Shown: one piece after another, positions 16,901-62,526 of the stretch
Layout of the letters: each line of letters opens with the position of its first letter
Numbering within the stretch: position 1 is the first letter of the stretch
Assembly: GCA_004431415.1 (NCBI GenBank)
Contig: QPMI01000638.1
Span: 62,001-126,000 of the forward strand
Direction: 5' to 3'
DNA from: Cyanophora paradoxa CCMP329
Taxonomy: Eukaryota; Plantae; Glaucophyta
DNA length: 64,000 bases
Made by a program: the position numbers and the translations under genes
The notes under the pieces: model-generated
Seen by the model: only the letters and a program-made list of their open reading frames with translations
The model's database searches: none
Told to the model about the DNA's origin: nothing

Positions 16901-19900
16901 GCGTCGCCGCCATGCAGTCCGACCTCCTCGCCTCGCAGTCCGCCCTTCGCGAGAGCCAGGCGGCGCGCGCCGCGCTGGAGGCGGAGCTGACGCGCCTTGG
17001 CGCCGACGTCGTCTCCTTCCGCGACAAGTACGAGCGGGCGCGCGAGGACAACCGCACCCGCGTCCTCGGCCGCGTCATCATGCGCATGCAGAAGTACGGC
17101 GCCCCTGCGTCCCGCTCCCCGCGGGCCGACCCCGCCGCTCTGAGCGCGGCGCAGGAGGGAGGCTGCCGTTGCGTTCGGCACGTGGCGGGAGTTCGCGGCG
17201 GACAGGGCCCGCAAGCGCAGCATCGTCACGCGACTCGTGGCCCGCATGCGCCACCGGACCGCCTTCCTGGCGTTCGACGCGTGGAAGCAGGAGCTGGCCG
17301 CCTCCAAGGCCGCCCGCGGCGAGCGGACGCTCCAGGAGGAGCTCGCCGGCGCGCAGGAGTCCTCCGCGAAGCTGCAGGCGGCGCTGCGCGAGAGTGAGGC
17401 GGCACGGGCGGCGCTGGAGGCCGAGCTGACGCGGCTCGGCGCCGACGCGACCCTGTTCCGCGAGAAGTTCGAGAAGGCGCGGGAAGAGGGCCGCACCAGG
17501 ATCCTCACCCGCGTCATCCTTAAGATGCAGAAGCGGGATCTCTCGTCGGCTTTTGGCACGTGGAGGGAGTACGCAGCGGACAGCGCGCGCAAGCGGAAGA
17601 TCGTGACGCGCTTCGTGGCCCGCATCCGCAACCGTGCCGTGCTCATGACCTTCGACGTGCGCGCCGCCGAGCCGAGCGCCGGCGCGCTGCATCGCTCATG
17701 CGCGTCTGCAGGCATGGAAGCAGGAGCTGGCGGTTTCCAAGGCAGCCCGCGGCGAGCGCTCGCTCCAGCAGCAGCTCGCCGATGCGCAGGAGGCGTCCTC
17801 CAAAGCGCAGGCGGCGCTCAGGGAGGCGGAGGCGGCACGGGCGGCGCTGGAGGCCGAGCTGACGCGGCTCGGCGCCGACGCGTCGGCCTTCCGCGAGAAG
17901 TTCGATAGGGAGCGCGAGGCGAGCCGCACCAAGATCCTCAACCGCGTCATTCTCAAGATGCAGAAGAGGGATCTCTCGTCGGCTTTCGGCACCTGGCGGG
18001 AGTACGCCTCCGAGTCGGCCCAGAAGCGGAGAATCGTGACGCGCTTCGTGGCCCGCATCCGCAACCGCGCCGTGCTCATGACCTTCGACGTGCGCGCCGC
18101 CGAGCCCACCGCTGGCGCGCTGCGTTGCTCATGCGCGTCTGCAGGCGTGGAAGCAGGAGCTGGCGGTTTCCAAGGCAGCCCGCGGCGAGCGTTCACTCCA
18201 GCAGCAGCTCGCCGATGCGCAGGAGGCGTCCGGCAAGGCGCAGGCGGCGCTCAGGGAGGCGGAGGCGGCACGGGCGGCGCTGGAGGCCGAGCTGACGCGG
18301 CTCGGCGCCGACGCGAACCTGTTCCGCGAGAAGTTTGAGAAGGCGCGGGAGGAGGGCCGCACCAAGATCCTCACCCGCGTCATCCTTAAGATGCAGAAGC
18401 GGGATCTCTCGTCGGCTTTTGGTACGTGGAGGGAGTACGCAGCGGACAGCGCGCGCAAGCGGAAGATCGTGACGCGCTTCGTGGCCCGCATCCGCAACCG
18501 TGCCGTGCTCATGACCTTCGACGTGCGCGCCGCCGAGCGGAGCTCCTTCGCATGTCCCTGAGACCTCCGGCAGGCGTGGAAGCAGGAGCTGGCGGCGCAG
18601 AAGGCGACCCGCGGGGAGCTGTCCCTGCAGCAGCGCCTGGCGGCCGCGCAGGGCGAGATCGAGGACCTGCGCCAGCGGCTCGCGCTGGGCGAGAAGGAAG
18701 AGGAGGAGCGCCGCGCCACGCTCGCCCGCCGTGCCCTCGTCGACGCCGAGCGGCGCCGCCGGAAGCTCGAGAACGTCATCGGCAAGGTGCCGAGCCCAGC
18801 GCGCCTCCTGGCCCGCCCGACTGCGCCGCGCCCGACGCCGGCGCAGTGGCAGAGGCAGGAGCTGTCACGGCCGTGGTGCGCGTGGCGGGAGCACGTGCTG
18901 CAGGCGCGGCAGATGCGGACGGCGATGCGCAAGGTCGTCGCGCGCATGCAGAACCGCACCCTGGAGCTCGCCTTCTTCGAGTGGGCCGGCGCCTTCAAGG
19001 CCGCGCGGGCGGAGCGGCGGGAGGCGGAGCTCGCGGCGGCGCGCGAGGCGCTGGCGGCGCAGGAGCGGGCCCTCGAGACGGCGCGCCTCTCGGGGGACGG
19101 CCTTTCCAGCGAGCTGCAGCTCGCCTCGAGCGAGCTGGCGGACCTGAAGAGGCGGCAGGAGGCGGAGCGCGAGGCGGCGCGGGCGCGCGTCATGACCGCC
19201 GTCGTGCGGCGCATGCGCGGCTTCACCGTCGCCGGCGCCTGGTCGGCCTGGCGCGAGTTCGTCGCCGAGCGGCGCCGGCAGCGGGCGGTCGCGCGGCGCG
19301 TCGTCGCGCGGCTCCAGCAGCGGAGCCTCGCCGTCGCCTTCGCGGGGTGGCGCGAGGAGGTGGAGGAGCAGCGGGCGGCGCGCGAGAAGGGCGGCCTGGC
19401 GGCGTCGCTGGAGGAGGCGGGGCGGCGGCTGCAGGAGGCCGAGGGGCGCGCCTCGGGGCTCGAGGAGGAGAAGGCGCGCCTCGAGGGCGAGCTCCTGCGC
19501 CTCCGCGCCGGCCTCGAGACGGTCTCCGGCTCCCGCGACCTCGCCCGCGCCGCCGCCCTCCGCACCATCCTCCTCCGCTGGCAGCGGTGCGCGCCCCGCT
19601 GCCCGCCCCGCCCCCGCCCCCGCCCCGTCTCACATCGCCCCCGGCCCCAGGCGCGACCTCTGGACGGCGATGCGGGCGTGGACGCAGTACACGGCGAGCG
19701 CGGCGCGCACCCGCGTCGCCGCCCGGCGCGCCGTCGCCATGCTCCAGAACCGCGCCCTCGCGACCGCCTTTTCGGTGCGACCCGCCGCCGTCTCCCGGCC
19801 CCGCCCCGCCTGACCCGCTGCAGGGCTGGTCGCAAGCGCTGCGGGAGGCGAAGGAAGAGCGCCGGGAGGCGGACTTGCGCGCCGCCCGCGATCGCATCGC

Positions 19901-53439: not shown

Positions 53440-55350
53440 GTTGAGAAGAGGCTCGGGCGGGGACATGGGGCCCGCCGCGCAGCTGCTAGCACGTGCAACC
53501 ACCGGGCAGGAGCTCCGTGAGAGTGCGCCCGCGCGTACTGACGGCCGCTCTCTGAAATAGGTTTACCAACACGAGTGGGACGTGGTCTGCGATGCATTCA
53601 TGCGGTTCGCGCTCCGTGCTGCCGGCGCCCAGGCTCGGCGGCCGACGCCCCTGCTGCAGGCGCTTCCCGACGAATAGGCACATGCCGTTCCTGCTGGGCA
53701 CGGAGGTGCTGGAGCAGCGCGTGGACCCCGAGAGGGGCGTCGAGATCCTCGTCCAGTACGTGAGGATTGACATCCAGGCGCCCATGTGGATCAAGCGGTG
53801 CGCGCCCCCCGGGCCGCTGCGCCGCGCGCGGGGGCGGCGGGCCGAGGGGGCGGCAGGATGCTGCACACGTACTCCTTCGTGTTCCACATGACCATCGAGC
53901 GGGACAACGCGAGGCGGGTCATGCGGACGGTCTCCAAGGCGCGCGGGGCGGGGGGCGGGGCCGGGTGGGGCTGGGGCGGGGCGTGAGGGGGCGGGGTTGG
54001 GCGCAGAACGCGACGTTCCCCGGGGCGATGGTGGTGCACGAGGAGACGGTGTTCACGCAGGACGCGGCGAACCCCGCGCACACGCACCTCTCCCAGCGCG
54101 GCTCCCTCGAGGTCCTCAAGCTCCCCGGCGTCGGTCCGCCCCGCCCCGCCCCGCCCCGCCCCGCCGGCCGCGCCCCGAGGCGTGGCGGCGGGGCAGGGCA
54201 CGTGATCGAGAAGTACAGCATGAAGAGCTACACGAAGAACTCGGTCCGCGCCCGCCAGATCGACGAGCTCTTCATCGCCGTCCGCCCCCGCCCCGCCCCG
54301 CCCCGCCCCGCCCCCGCCGCCCCCGCTGCCCCGGCTGCCCGCCGACCCCGACCCCGCAGGAAGTGTACGAGGAGCGGCGGAAGCGGGGCCTGCCGGCGCC
54401 CGAGGGGGCGCGGGCCTCGCCGCAGGCGGCGCTGGCGCTCTCGCGGGACACGTCGCACTACAGCTTCGCGGACCTGGGGCCGGACGCGTCGGCCTCGGCC
54501 GGCCTGCGGGAGATCCCGCACCCGCACCACGCGCACCACGAGGAGATCGAGCCGCCGCACTCGGCCCGCGGCCGCCACGAGCCGGCCGCGCCCATGGTCC
54601 CGGGGGCCCACCCCGGGGGCCGCATGCCGCGGGCGCGGAGCGTGTCCGACCTGCCGGCGGCGGAGGCGGCGCGGGGCGGCGCGGAGACGCTCCTCCCGAG
54701 CAGCAGCGGCAGCGAGCTCTCCGACGGGGCCGCCCCCGGGCGCCCCGGGCGCGAGTCGCCCACCCACAAGCGCCGGCCGAGCACGCCCCAGCGAAGTCCC
54801 TGGATGGCGGGGCGGCCCGGCCCCGCCCCCTCCCTCATCGACCCCATGGGCCGCGAGAGCCTCGAGCTGCCCCCTCCCCTCCACATCTCCCTCCACCCGC
54901 CCTCTCGCGTACGCCGCCCCGCCCCCGCCCCGCCCCCGCGCCTCACGCCGGGCAGGACTCCCCCGTCCGGGCCCTCCCCCGCATCCAAACGCCGACCGGT
55001 CGGAGCCGAGCAGAGGGCCCGTGCGTGGCGCAGCAGCCGGTGTGCGGCTCGTGGGATGCGGTGCGTGACGGGCGCGGCGCAGGGTGCCGGAGAACGTGTT
55101 TGTGAGCCGGCCGTACGTCTTCCGGACGGGGAAGTACCACCTGGAGAAGACCTGCCCCGCCGCCCGACGCGCCAGGTCCAAGCCCGCTGACGTTATTGCC
55201 GCCAAGGCCCGCCCTGCCCCGCCCCGCCCCGCCCCGCCCGCCCAGCCCCGCCCCGCCTGATGGGCGGCGCAGAGCCTGTCGCCGTGCCCCCAGTGCGCCG
55301 GGCACCTCGCTGCCGAGCTCGACGACGCCGTCGTGTATTCTACCCACTGA
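53440..55350 (+). CDS. PRELI/MSF1-domain protein with C-terminal Cys/His motif
   Basis: SSVR|VYQHEWDVVCDAFMR|RFPT...IQAPMWIKR...NATF...VHEETVFTQDAANPAHT...IEKY. The C-terminus reads GKYHLEKTC...SPCPQCA. The start is uncertain. Confidence 0.72.
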
Positions 55351-57613
55351 GCACGCCCCCTCCGCTGCATTCCGCGCCCTCTCCCCGCCCCACCTTACCT
55401 AGCCTTCGATTGCATGGCTTCCCAGTCCCTCGCCCGCATTACTTAACTGACGATAGCTATTGGTTGGGGAAGGACCCCCTTCCCCTTCCCCCACTTGGGG
55501 GTGTTCGGGTGCCCACCCTAGGCCAAAATGAAATGTCCCGACCTCCCAAAACCCGGGTTTTCTCGCCGGATCCTAGGAAGGCATGTCTCTAGGAGTCCGG
55601 AAACATGTTCCGGGAGATCCGGGTCCCGTCGGGTCGACCAGGAATGGGCAATAACACATTTTCACAAAATGCGATCTAGCGCCTCACCAAGTGGCGATAT
55701 ATCTGCCGGACCGAGTGCGCCTGAATGCGCCTGATACGCCCGACGATTCATGTCATACATGCCGAGACCGGAGGGGCAAAGGGTGGTCCGCTAGGCCGCC
55801 TCAAGTACCTGTTGTACCGGACGCCGAAAAAACGCGCTCCTGAGAGTTTCGGCCTATCGTGTTGTAGTACCCGTGCTTTAAGCCGGCAAGCTAGCCGACA
55901 GGCTTGCTAGCTGGCCAACTAGCTGAGCTCCGGCTGTAGGCTTGCTGCAGCTGGCATGGACTTCAGCCGCACGACATCAAGCGCGTGGCGTCCGTCGACA
56001 TCGTACCGGCCGCGGCACGTGCGAATGCGTCTGCGCCCGCCGAGTGCGCGCCGAGGTTCTGCTCTGCTGCATGGATCGTTCGCCCGGGCCGGGCCGCTCG
56101 AGCCTCACTCGCTCGTGCGCGCGCGCCGCGCGCCAGGTACGAACTCGTGCGCTCGCCCCGCGCGCCACCTCCGCCGCGCCGCCCTCTCACTTCCCTTACA
56201 CTTCGAATTCCTCTCGAGCTCACTTCCTCTCACTTCTCACTTCCTCTCGAGCTCACTTGCAGCAGGCGAGACGCAACATCGCATCTGCAGCTGTTCCATC
56301 GGTGCGCATGCTGCACAGCTGTGCTCGTCCGACGGTCGCTTCCTCTGCCGCAGGGGAAGGGTCCGGTACCGGTTGCAATTGCACGACCCATGCTTGCCAC
56401 CCTCAGTCTTGCACCCGCATGCAATCGACCGGGTCGAGCCGCTAGCAAGCATCACACCGCCTCCAATTGCAAGACCTCGGCCTCCGCCTCCGTTGACGGC
56501 GCCGGCGCGCCCGTCCGCCCGCGCGCCTTGCTGCGCTCCTCGTCCGCGCTAATATAAGCGCCTGCCGCTGCGCCTCCGCCCGCGCCAACGCCGGCCGGCA
56601 GCGCGGCCGCCGGGCTCCTCCCGCTCCTCGGGGGCGGAGGCGCAGCGGACGGCAGCGCGGCTCGCCTGGCGGGGCGGAGGCGCGGCGGGCGGCGCGCGGC
56701 GCAGCTCGCCGGGTGGGACGGGAGGCGCTGCGGGCGGCGGAGTGGCTATCCGGGCGGGGCGGAGGCGCGGCGGGCGGCGGCGCGGCGGGCGGCGGCGCGT
56801 CTCGACGGGCAGGGCGGAGGCGCGTTCGCGATCGGGGGCGACGCGGCTCGCAGGGCGGGCGGCTCGCAGGGCGGGGCGCCGCGGCGGAGGCGCGGCGGAC
56901 GGTGGCGCTTCTCAAGATCTAGTCCTCCGCTGAGCTAGATCTAGATCTTGTCCTCCCCCCACCCCCCCCCCCCCCCCCCATGATCGAGCTGCTATCAGAG
57001 TCCACACTATCTCGGCTCAAAGATAACGTGACCAGCTGCAGGGGTGAACTTTCCTGCTCATGATCAACCTTTAGAGGTCCTTCCCCTCCAACAGGGGCAG
57101 TGCAACTGCAGTGTCCCTGTTCCGTTCATATTACTAGTGTGCCTACCGTATTATTCGAATTCGAGCGTGCATACATGCGCGCTGCGCATGCCCGGCCCGT
57201 ATACGTACGAACGACCGGAAGAGGCCGAAGAGCTGAAGAGGGTTCGCGCTCGGGCCATTTTCAGCAGATTCGATCAATCGTTCATGACCTGCCTTGCAGG
57301 ACGTCCAGCGTGCCAAGGCAGACCTTCGACGGAAGAGTCTCGTGCTCGATTGATCGTGTTCTGCCGGCGTGCTTTTTCCGCAAGCTCGTTATCCCTTCTG
57401 TCGTGTAGTAGTATTTAAAAAAACAGAGCAGCTGCAGTCGTTGCGTTGAGCCCAGTGCCCACCCACATTGAACGTGGCTCGGCTAGCTACGGCTTGAGCG
57501 CTAGTGCTAGCTACATGCATAGCTATAGCTATAGCTGCCAAATATATTGTGCATATCATAGTGAACATACAAAGCACAAAACTGCCATTTACTTGCAGGG
57601 GAGCGGTGGTCCC

Positions 57614-57889
57614 GAATCAGAGTTGCGATTACGATCGGAATCAGAGTTGCGATTACGATCGGAATCAGAGTTGCGATTACGATCGGAATCAGAGTTGCGA
57701 TTACGATCGGAATCAGAGTTGCGATTACGATCGGAATCAGAGTTGCGATTACGATCGGAATCAGAGTTGCGATTACGATCGGAATCAGAGTTGCGATTAC
57801 GATCGGAATCAGAGTTGCGATTACGATCGGAATCAGAGTTGCGATTACGATCGGAATCAGAGTTGCGATTACGATCGGAATCAGAGTTG
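57614..57889 (+). repeat. Perfect 24-bp tandem array (GAATCAGAGTTGCGATTACGATCG) x11 plus a 12-nt partial copy
   Basis: Identical units start every 24 nt from 57614 to 57878, with no spacers. Confidence 0.98.
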
Positions 57890-57915
57890 AGAATTCCGCT
57901 CACTTTCCCCTGCAG

Positions 57916-58459
57916 GTCGCCCGCAAGGGGCGGGCGATGCTCCCGTGGGTGGCGCGTCAGGCTCTCGACTGCCGCCACTACGAGTACGCTGGTCTTGCGT
58001 TTCGACCCCCTCTGCCACGCGGTCTTGATGCTTATTTTGCGCAGGTTCCGGCAGCTCATGCAGCACGCCGTCCGGCGGCACCCCAAGGACGAGGACCCGC
58101 CGTGCACGCTCCAGCTCGTCTGCGAGGCCTGGACCTCGAAGACGTGCGGGGTGTGCGGCAAGATCAACTACGGGCTCGGCTCGAAGAGGGTCTTCGAGTG
58201 CCGCCCCGGGTGCGGCTTCCGGGCGGACCGCGACGGCGGCGCCGCGCGGTGCGTGTTGTGTCTATACACGCCTATACACAATCGCTGCTCCCCCCGCCTA
58301 GTCCCGACACGGCCTAGCCACGGCATAATTTTCCGTCTAGGCCTAGGGCCGGCTCGCCCTCCCAGCGCCGCCCGATCGCAATCGTAATCGTACTCTTGCA
58401 GGAGCATCTTCATCCGCTACGGCACCGGCGTGGACGCGAAGCGCCTGCTCGGCTCGTAG
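57916..58459 (+). mobile_element. Fanzor/TnpB-family nuclease, C-terminal half, split by two spliceosomal introns
   Basis: Exons 57916-57983, 58045-58248 and 58402-58459 splice in frame to VARKGRAMLPWVARQALDCRHYEFRQLMQHAVRR...LQLVCEAWTSKTCGVCGKINYGLGSKRVFECRPGCGFRADRDGGAARSIFIRY...*. This contains HYxFR, ExxTSKTCxxC, the second Zn pair and the RuvC-III DRD..AAR.I motif. Confidence 0.82.
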
Positions 58460-58469
58460 CTATAGCTAG

Positions 58470-58715
58470 CGCTAGGCTCCGATCCCCTTTTCTCCATCAG
58501 GGCACCAGTCCCTGCGGGTTACGCTCTCATCCCTAACAGCACGGGTACAGTTAAAGCGCTGAGGTAGGAGGTCCGGCCGCGCCCGTAGCTTAGAAAGAGA
58601 ATTCGAGTCGGTTCGACGGAATTGTCGCGAGAAGTCGAGATCTAGAGGGGTAGTGGCGCAGGCGTGCTTAACCCCAAAGTCCGCCGGAGCTTGAAGCGCG
58701 CGGATCGGAGCAGCT
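58470..58715 (+). ncRNA. Candidate Fanzor omega-RNA scaffold / element right end
   Basis: Lies immediately 3' of the nuclease stop. A 10-bp closing stem GCTCCGATCC (58476-85) / GGATCGGAGC (58702-11) encloses CAGGG/CCCTG, GGGTTACGC/GCGT..AACCC and ACGGG/CCCGT helices. Confidence 0.4.
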
Positions 58716-58879
58716 GCGACGATCGATCAGCCAGCGTGCGTACGCGTGCACCGAGGCTCGAGGAGCAGACCTAGAGGCGCGACGCGTACAATCAGGCACC
58801 GGCACAGGGCGCGATTTTCGCTACGTCACGTCGATGCTACCGTCTTCCTAGAGCCCGTAGAGCGCTTTCGAGCGTCGAG

Positions 58880-61800
58880 ATGCAGTCGGGGACCGAAACC
58901 TCAGCTGCCAGCGCCGGCGACTCGCGGCTTGGACCCCTGACAATGGAAGTGCGTACGAGGCTGGGCAGAGCTGCGGGGGCTGTCCTAATATACCGCGATG
59001 CCCACAGGTCGTGCACATGCACACGGCGATCCGCTCAGAGCTGGCAGCACTGCAGGAGCTCGCCGCGGGCTTGGAGGAGGGCACGTTCGACCAGGACAGG
59101 ATGCGGGCCCTCGACGCTCGCTTCTCATTTCTGTGGGCCATGCAGAGGCATCACAGCAAGGTACGCCCGCATCCTGCACCGCGCCAGCGCTCCTCAGCCT
59201 CGGTGCCGCGGCGCGCAGGCGGAGGACGACGTCATTTTCCCGTCGATCACCGCGAGGCTCAAGCTCCTAGCAAAGACGGACACACCGCACACGGATTCCG
59301 CGCCTTCCGCCGCGTCGTGCACGGGGATCTGTGGGCAGGTGCCGCGGGGCTGCGGGGAGGCGCGGGAGCAGCACGGGGTGTCGGCGCCGTACAGCTGCGA
59401 CCACGAGAACGAGGACCGCTTCTTCTGTGCGATCGACGAGCTGCTGTGGAGCGTGCTGGCGACGCAGGAGCTGAGCGTGCGGGCGCCGCTGGTGGCGCAG
59501 GCGGTGCACAAGCTGACCGTCCTCGACACGAACCTCGGCTTCCACCTGAGCCGCGAGGAGCGCGAGCTGCTGCCGCTCATGCGCGAGCTCTTCACCCCCG
59601 AGGAGCAGCTGGAGCTCGCGCGGGCGCTGCGCCCCGAGGGGGCCCCTCCGGGGGAGGCCACGGAGGGGGCGGCGATGGTCGTCGAGGCGCACGAGGCGAT
59701 TCGGCGCGAGTTCCGCGAGATCGAGCTCGCCTCCCGCCGCCTCGACCCCGCCTCCGACGCCCAGGCCCGCCCCCCGCCCGCCCGCCCGCGCGCGCGGGGC
59801 GAGCGGGGCGCAGGTGGAGGCGCTGGCGCGGCGCTTCCGGGCGCTGTGGGCGGAGGTCAAGGGGCACGCCGACCGCGAGGACCGGGTCTTCTTCCCCGCC
59901 CTCGAGGCGCGCCTGCAGCAGCGGGGCGAGGCGGCCGTCTCGAAGAGCTTCGGCATGGAGCACGACTGCGGCCTCCTCCTCTTCAACGAGCTCGCGCGCC
60001 CCGCCGCCCCGCTCCGGCGCCCCGCACGCCGGCCTGACGCCCGTCCAGCACGAGCTGCTGCAGGCGGCGCTGGCGGGCCCGCCGGCGGGGGAGCGCTCGG
60101 CGCTGCTCGCCGACATCCGGGTGCGGCTGTCGACGCTGACGGAGAGCCTGGCGCTGCACCTCGTCAAGGAGGAGCGCGAGATCCTACCCCAGCTCCGCTC
60201 CCTCTTCTCCCAGGACGAGCAGGAGGCCCGCCCCGCCCCCGCCCCGTCCCCGGGCGCCGCGCCCCCAGGCGCCGCTGACGCTGCGCAGGCGCTGATGGGG
60301 CGGATCATCGGGCAGCGGCCGTCGGCGATGCTGCAGGAGATGCTCCCGTGGGTCATGCAGCGTCTCAGCGCCTCCGAGGGCCGCAACATGATGCACCACA
60401 TCCGGAAGGCCCGCCCGCTGTTGCCCGCCCGCCGGCGGCCCGGGGCGGGGCGAGCGGGGCGGGCGCAGGTGACGAACGGCACCATGTTCGAGAAGTGGCT
60501 CTCGTGCTGGTGGGTCTTCCCGGAGGACGAGGCGGGCACGGGGCGGCCCGCCGCCACCCTGCGCGACGGCACCGGCATCGGGGCCGGGGCGGGGGCGGGG
60601 GGCGAGGGGGCGATGGAGGAGGAGGGGCCTGGGAGCGCGGAGGACGTCGAGGCTGCGATCCGGGCGGTGGCGCGGGACCCGGGCATCGACGTGCAGGCCA
60701 AGACGGCCCGCATCCAGGCGCTGATGACCCGCCGCTGGCGCCTCAAGCACGGGCGCGGGGGCAGCCCCGAGCGGGGCCAGCCGCAGCAGCACATGCACCT
60801 CAAGGGCCAGTGCGAGGCCTCCTCGCCCGACCCCTGCCCCCTCCACGCCGCAAACCCCGCCGACCTCAACCCCACCTACCACGTCCGCCCCTTGGCCCCC
60901 CTGCCGAGCGGGGCGCCTCCGCTGAGGGGCGGGCAGAGCGGGGAGCGGGGCGTGCTGGGGTGCGCGCACTACCAGAGGTCGTGCAAGTTGCGAGCGGCGT
61001 GCTGCGGGCGCTTCTTCACGTGCCGCGTGTGCCACGACGACGCCTCGGACCACACCATGGACCGGTGCGCCCGCCCCCTCCCGCTCCCCCGCCGTGCCCG
61101 CTTGACGGCCCTCCAGCTACGCCACCCGCGAGATGCTCTGCATGCGCTGCAGTACCGTGCAGCCCATCGGGCCCACCTGCCGCTCCCCCGTCTGCTGCGG
61201 CCGGCCCCTCGCCCGCTACTACTGCCACATTTGTCCGCACCCAGCACCCGCCCGGCGGGGCCTGCTCATCGCCGCTGACGGGGCGGGGCAGGCAAGTTCT
61301 TCGACGACGACGGGACGAAGAGCATCTACCACTGCCCGTTCTGCAACATCTGCCGGATGGGGCGGGGCCTGGGGATCGACTTCTTCCACTGCATGCGCTG
61401 CAACGCGTGCATGGCGATGTCCCTGCGGGAGCACCGCTGCCTCCAGAACTCCCTCGAGTCGAACTGCCCCATCTGCAGCCAGTACATGTTCACCTCCACC
61501 GCCTACGTGCGCCCCCGGCCGCCGGCGCCGGCGCCCCGCGCAGGGCGCGACGCCGGGGCGGGCAGGTGAAGCTGCTGCGGTGCGGGCACCTGATGCACAC
61601 GGAGTGCTACCGGGCGTACATTCGGAGCCAGTACACGTGCCCCATCTGCTGCAAGTCCCTCCACGACATGTCCGCCCTCTTCGCCCAGCTCGTCCGCCCC
61701 TCCCCGCCCGCCCCCGCCCCCCCGGCCCCCGCCGGCGCCGACCGCGCGGCAGGAGGCGCTGGTGGCGAACGACGTGCTGCCGCCCGAGTACGCGGGGCGC

Positions 61801-61908
61801 ACCTCCAACATCTACTGCAACGACTGCGAGCAGAAGAGCACCGTCCGCTTCCACTTCCTCTACCACCGCTGCGCCCACTGCGCCTCCTTCAACACCCGCG
61901 TCACCTGA
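58880..61908 (+). CDS. Hemerythrin + CHY zinc finger + RING E3 ligase (BRUTUS/HRZ-like iron sensor)
   Basis: HHE motifs MHTAIRSEL, HHSK|AEDDVIFP, HLSREERELLP, AHEAIRREF, HADREDRVFFP, HLVKEEREILP. Also CHY GCAHYQRSCKLRAACCGRFFTCRVCHD, CTCHY, RING CPICSQYMF...CGHLMHTEC...CPIC and a C-terminal zinc ribbon. Confidence 0.92.
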
Positions 61909-62526
61909 CACCCAGTCCCGTCCCGGAGAGGGCGACTCGGCGAGCTCCCTTCCTGCGCATGCATCTCTAGCTATTCAAAAAAAGTATTGATAGTTTATTC
62001 AAATTTTATTGAAACCAAACCTGGGCCACTTTTTTCATGATCAGCCTCAGACATGTACAGCTGCAGGTACCGGTTACCGTACGAAACGAATCATGATCAG
62101 TGATGCCATGATGGTGCCACGGTGCGCATGCCACGGTGCACATTGGTCGATGTGAAAGCCGACTCTGGTCATCTCGCAATCGCCGAGTCGATTCGCACGG
62201 CGCGAGCGAATATATATCAATCCAACAAAAATCGAAAAGCTAAACGGTGCAACGACTCGATAGGTATTCAATGATTGTACGAGTGCACGTCCGACGGTCG
62301 GCAGTGAATTCGAAGTCGACTCTGCTGATCATGATTTCGATTTGCAAGCAAACAAAAATCGCAAGCAAACAAAAATCGAAAAACTAAACGACTCGGCGAA
62401 ATAAACGAAGAATTGCGGGCAAGGTCCAGGCGCAATTATGAAGGGGGGGGGAATCAAATAAGAGAATGCTGGGCCGCGGGGCGAGGGGGACGGCGGGTGC
62501 TAGAGGAGCCCGGGCGCGGGGCGGGG

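Follow-up and report, generated by a model that had tools for sequence, protein, structure and literature searches.

The three Fanzor-like exons near the end of a 64,000-nt stretch of the Cyanophora paradoxa CCMP329 genome (contig QPMI01000638.1; hereafter the window) raise the question of whether they encode a small protein of their own or are the remains of a larger transposon-borne nuclease, and, if the latter, how the rest was lost. Taken together, our results make it very probable that the locus is a copy, truncated at its 5' end and dead as a nuclease, from a young Fanzor2-like transposon family of C. paradoxa whose genes contain introns. A literature search including supplements returned no paper naming Fanzors in Cyanophora; introns in Fanzors as such have already been described (PMC10530073).

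The three exons and two GT-AG introns proposed by a first-pass annotation of the DNA proved to be real. On the forward strand, exon A (57916..57983, with an in-frame ATG at 57937) is followed by an intron of 61 nt (57984..58044), exon B (58045..58248), an intron of 153 nt that lies within the RuvC-III helix (58249..58401) and the coding portion of exon C up to a TAG stop (58402..58459). By frame reading and sequence match, the exon peptides are identical residue for residue to residues 979-1087 of P0157 (tig00000342_g24202), a predicted gene model of 1087 aa referred to here as the parent, exon A corresponding to residues 979-1001 and exon B to residues 1001-1069. Both introns run from GT to CAG with the reading frame kept across them, and both were skipped in contigs of the RNA-like runs X15, X16 and X19, which come from three studies, and in no contig of the DNA run X1; the RNA status of the three runs was a guessed assignment that the splicing itself supports. 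Since the exons are common to many copies, this splicing is shown for the family and is not assignable to this locus. The first-exon peptide, as originally read, belongs to a genuine exon but began ten codons too late, the true start being 57916 behind an acceptor AG at 57914-57915. Immediately upstream, 57891..57915 (forward strand) is the 3' remnant of a further Fanzor intron carrying this acceptor: matches to multi-copy DNA contigs start at 57891 and RNA contigs enter at 57915/57916.

Exon B carries the rearranged RuvC-II glutamate, the C4 zinc finger and the RuvC-III aspartate. In searches of the spliced model, which were run exon by exon, it matched PF07282 (C-terminal TSxxC4-zinc-finger-RD motif) with an E value of 1.9e-9, above the cut-off, and its best solved relative was the mimivirus Fanzor2 (PDB 9B0L). 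The glutamate (codon 58124-58126), which aligns with E467 of ApmFz2, the aspartate of DRD (codon 58232-58234) and the four zinc-binding cysteines are intact, as had been claimed. A profile search gave 9B0L with an E value of 1.6e-75 and no Fanzor1 chain among the matches listed, and a fold search placed 9B0L at rank 1 and SpuFz1/GtFz1 at rank 42 or lower. The original assignment to Fanzors therefore stands and narrows: the family is Fanzor2-like, closer to ApmFz2/IS607 TnpB than to Fanzor1, as judged by profile and fold ranks rather than by a labelled tree. The AlphaFold model of the parent (pLDDT 61, pTM 0.53) was used just for this fold ranking and is reliable for the C-terminal part only, because the alignment misplaced RuvC-I.

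The parent possesses a complete catalytic triad (D613, E1028 and D1064), and a profile built from 64 relatives resolved its layout as a WED-like region, RuvC-I with D613, a long insertion and then the C-terminal half. When applied to the six frames of the window, the same profile found the exon B region only. The RuvC-I aspartate is absent from the entire 64 kb, whether sought with the profile, with tblastn, with exact 7-mers or by reading all six frames, and residues 1-978 of the parent, including WED/REC, gave neither 7-mer runs nor tblastn matches in the window beyond scattered low-complexity words; the first-pass failure to find an upstream exon for RuvC-I or WED/REC is thereby borne out. 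Upstream ORFs between 55528 and 57415 had no Pfam match, and in all about 90% of the parent protein is absent at the locus. As mutation of RuvC-I in the mimivirus Fanzor2 ApmFz2, with loss of its aspartate, abolishes cleavage (PMC10530073), the locus product cannot be a nuclease; with two of the three catalytic acids and neither WED nor REC, a 102-aa peptide initiated at the 57937 ATG would be incapable of DNA cleavage.

Related copies, whose existence had been left for genome searches to decide, are numerous. A search with exon B alone retrieved near-identical EukProt proteins labelled Cyanophora paradoxa, and 17 EukProt models (P0157 and 16 others) match the parent from staggered residues onward, starting at residues 1, 853, 967, 978, 986, 994, 998-1002, 1024, 1036 and 1038, three of these classes of start point falling inside exon B. 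One of the models, P0152 (102 aa), is identical to the peptide from the ATG at 57937. No second copy of the element was found inside the window, and a metagenome scan for DNA of the parent or sister copies yielded distant relatives only, 42-70% identical over short stretches. The RuvC-III motif of the family reads DRD-G-G-AARS, with glycine and serine (58232-58249 and 58403-58405) at two positions that are asparagine in 75% and 94% of 127 other matches; sister families in the genome keep these usually conserved asparagines. Fanzor2-like models of C. paradoxa can be very long (P0157, 1087 aa; P0169, 1449 aa; P0070, 1839 aa), with long insertions after RuvC-I in P0157 and P0169 and UCH/USP and zf-CW domains in front in P0070. 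Furthermore, P0159, P0168 and P0004 are host-gene models, one of them AATF/Che-1, that end in Fanzor tail exons and may represent exon capture or prediction artefacts.

The abundance of the family in genomic DNA rises steeply towards its 3' end. Relative to the unique flank, depth was about 6-fold and 14-fold over exon A, 24- to 42-fold over exon B and intron 2 and 200- to 315-fold over 58376-58600, and it fell to single copy from 58619; these values are summed contig depths of DNA run X1 from 57890 on and are rough, being taken at 82% likeness. Loose contig ends place the right end of the family at approximately 58599-58602. The segment 58396..58599 (forward strand; its 5' limit is approximate) is thus a high-copy right end present in about 200-300 copies, at the position expected for an omega-RNA scaffold. 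The consensus ends of five other copies read GCAA, whereas the copy at this locus lacks the C or else the last three bases. Depth and gene-model starts together describe a family with a fixed 3' end, variable 5' loss, 3' over-abundance and retained introns.

At the 5' junction, the perfect repeat array noted previously was recovered at 57614..57889 (276 nt, no strand) as 11.5 copies of a 24-nt unit with zero mismatches. Elsewhere in the window the unit has no 11-nt match and two 10-nt matches, but its translation recurs directly before P0002, a copy broken inside exon B, which suggests a link between the unit and either the element or its 5' junctions, be it as left end, target or expansion at the time of insertion. 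One of the two 10-nt matches is inverted: the reverse complement of the unit (57614-57637) has this word in common with the terminal part of intron 2 on its 3' side (58374-58394). An 8-nt direct repeat marks both junctions, with a left copy at 57889..57896 and a right copy at 58597..58604 that overlaps the element end (both forward strand), and the word occurs nowhere else on the forward strand of the window. Such a match is expected by chance in 1.3% of random intergenic 26-mers; because the repeat overlaps element sequence at both ends, it is a candidate target duplication or junction microhomology rather than a proven one. No target duplication of at least 10 nt was present at the locus.

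The proposal of a structured 3' RNA at 58460 to about 58760 was not supported. This region folds worse than its shuffles (z +1.16), no sub-window of the tail folded better (z -0.3 to +1.0), the z-score never fell below -1.0 in 11 windows across the 3' region, and Rfam returned chance matches only. Moreover, 58600-58750 is unique flank, beyond the element end at about 58599. With respect to an omega-RNA, the right-end tail is conserved and high-copy and its folding z-scores are not significant. The terminal bases of the family have possible pairing partners, near chance level, at 58396-58399 (about 205 nt upstream) and 58446-58450 (about 155 nt upstream); the former sits within the intron 2 acceptor, and splicing and omega-RNA formation would compete if the pairing were real.

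With regard to transcription, the depth in the first bin of X15 and X16 is fully explained by contigs that enter at the exon A acceptor. In one X16 contig of 1865 nt, exon A is preceded by about 1658 nt (about 553 codons) from outside the read stretch that begins at 57890, which fits the mRNA of the long gene while leaving some room for a local origin; spliced Fanzor RNA would accordingly come mainly from a longer copy. RNA specific to the locus was found as a 724-nt spliced contig (58570-59410, in X15 and X16) leading from within the right end through the single-copy flank 58600..58879 and on into the initial exons of the gene that follows. The depth of the contig crossing the right end was 5-10, small beside that of the family, and a contig is not proof of one molecule. 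The element end may hence be part of the 5' leader of the neighbouring host gene (58880..61909, forward strand; domain search and RNA contig), which lies outside the element and encodes hemerythrin, CHY and RING domains. This domain order is that of the plant BRUTUS/HRZ iron sensors. On its other side the locus is preceded by a PRELI-like gene (53600-55330), just past which a short G/C hairpin after TT (55465-55490) resembles a Helitron2 5' hairpin. The interval 55400-57600 has no Pfam match and may hold another mobile element. In the PRELI-like region and the BRUTUS-like gene, several host introns are rich in CCGCC repeats and seem to have GC as their first two bases, and a 433-nt tandem repeat of 2.9 copies lies at 17282-18543 within a very long coiled-coil-like gene.

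Several other explanations of the locus have to be weighed against 5' truncation. The first-pass annotation offered an internally deleted copy of an active family, of which the incompleteness stood, as did the existence of a relative with an identical tail, the 1087-aa parent; the internal deletion is less well founded, and 5' truncation is preferred because neither a left end nor any N-terminal exon was found at the locus. If the array and the upstream DNA, perhaps from 57166, were nevertheless the left part of the element, the copy would still lack nuclease activity, although it could be mobilised in trans. Internal deletions do occur in the CRe elements of Chlamydomonas reinhardtii (PMC3627910), the translated array unit abuts P0002 although that copy is broken at a different point, and in P0166 an N-terminus resembling that of the long Fanzor P0169 is linked to these same C-terminal exons (83% over 41 aa). 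However, no N-terminal peptide of P0157, P0166, P0169 or P0070 was found upstream, and a 9-nt word shared between 57157-57165 and the right flank, which would suit this explanation, is near chance over 2.5 kb, so that this explanation keeps a minor share of the probability. The assembly might also have placed the end of a full-length gene beside a flank that does not belong to it, given that the junction lies at a perfect repeat and that reads cover 57890 onward only. Yet the array is just 276 nt long, the right junction is supported by DNA and RNA reads, many other truncated copies exist and a similar junction is seen at the P0002 locus, which makes such an artefact very improbable. An origin by retro-copying of mRNA is ruled out by the presence of both introns.

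The alternative that the remnant is a repurposed mini-Fanzor, a 102-aa peptide of RuvC-II, zinc finger and RuvC-III serving a role of its own, could draw on the spliced frame that is open from the ATG at 57937 and on the identical model P0152. It is extremely unlikely, however: RuvC-I is missing, the peptide shows zero divergence from the parent tail, breakpoints in the family are staggered and in part inside exon B, RNA contigs enter exon A at the 57916 acceptor and not near 57937, and the RuvC fold would be incomplete, without its central strands (RuvC anatomy, PMC11423790). That the right end of a copy with a dead protein is processed into a guide RNA for a full-length Fanzor2 in trans, with the single-copy flank supplying the guide (58600-58620), is unlikely, although ghost omega-RNAs act in this way for SpuFz1 (PMC10432273), the tail of about 200 nt resembles the ApmFz2 scaffold in length (PMC11832414) and locus-specific RNA spans the right end. 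The possible pseudoknot partners of the GCAA end at 58396 and 58446 would escape minimum-energy folding, but pairings of 4-5 nt are near chance, no folding signal was obtained, the locus copy lacks the terminal GCAA seen on five other ends, and the RNA over the end is the leader of an mRNA, long and spliced.

For the preferred reading of a 5'-truncated copy, we propose that copies are made at the DNA level, because introns are kept, and that copying begins from the fixed right end and breaks off at differing positions. By analogy with the Helitron2-mobilised CRe-1/2/3, a transposase acting in trans might achieve this by one-ended rolling-circle copying; the route is drawn by analogy because neither a transposase nor Helitron2 ends (3' hairpin, asymmetric repeats) were identified for the family, with no clear Helitron2 3' terminal hairpin near 58560-58600 in the locus copy and no IS607-type serine-recombinase TnpA among the window ORFs. 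It is quite improbable that Fanzor2 itself drives the 3'-anchored copying, a staggered cut giving the short duplication, copying proceeding from the omega-RNA end and the tails forming a library of trans-acting guides. Were this true, hundreds of tails, some of them in host-gene leaders (here that of the BRUTUS-like iron-sensor gene), would guide an unusually large Fanzor2. Taken by itself the locus is dead, a fragment of ordinary transposon debris; its value is as a pointer to the family, whose 1087-aa parent is worth assaying. Whether the Fanzor protein causes duplications was left open in 2013 for Fanzor1/Helitron2 elements (PMC3627910); this can be tested with the present family, which is young and has hundreds of ends in an alga that grows in culture.

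Among known systems, the best sequence, profile and fold match is Fanzor2 as represented by ApmFz2 (ApmFNuc, mimivirus L79, PDB 9B0L), with which the family has in common the rearranged RuvC-II glutamate before the C4 zinc finger, the DRD motif and a conserved right end of about 200 nt. In contrast to ApmFz2, the copy at the locus lacks RuvC-I, WED and REC, while the parent has a gene rich in introns, is roughly double the length and has an insertion of approximately 250 aa after RuvC-I, and it carries glycine and serine where relatives mostly have asparagine in DRDxNxARN. The abundance of copies that have lost the protein but retain the omega-RNA region recalls the ghost Fanzor loci of Spizellomyces punctatus, but those have both inverted-repeat ends and give working omega-RNAs (PMC10432273), whereas at the present locus no left end was found, the terminal bases differ from those of other copies and the RNA crossing the right end is a long spliced contig. 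The closest parallel in genomic behaviour is provided by the Fanzor1 elements CRe-1/2/3 of C. reinhardtii, which are 3'-biased, retain introns and show duplications of 7-19 bp on truncated copies, a pattern attributed by Bao and Jurka (2013) to one-ended rolling-circle copying with mobilisation by Helitron2 (PMC3627910). Those elements have verified Helitron2 ends and encode Fanzor1, whereas the present family encodes a Fanzor2-like protein and such ends were not found; both comprise multi-exon Fanzors that retain their introns, keep the 3' end intact, are often truncated at the 5' end and are over-represented towards the 3' end, and the 8-nt repeat is a candidate counterpart of the short variable duplications of the CRe elements (PMC3627910; PMC10530073). 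In the C. paradoxa family it is a Fanzor2 that displays this 3'-anchored pattern of truncation, known since 2013 from Fanzor1/Helitron2 elements.
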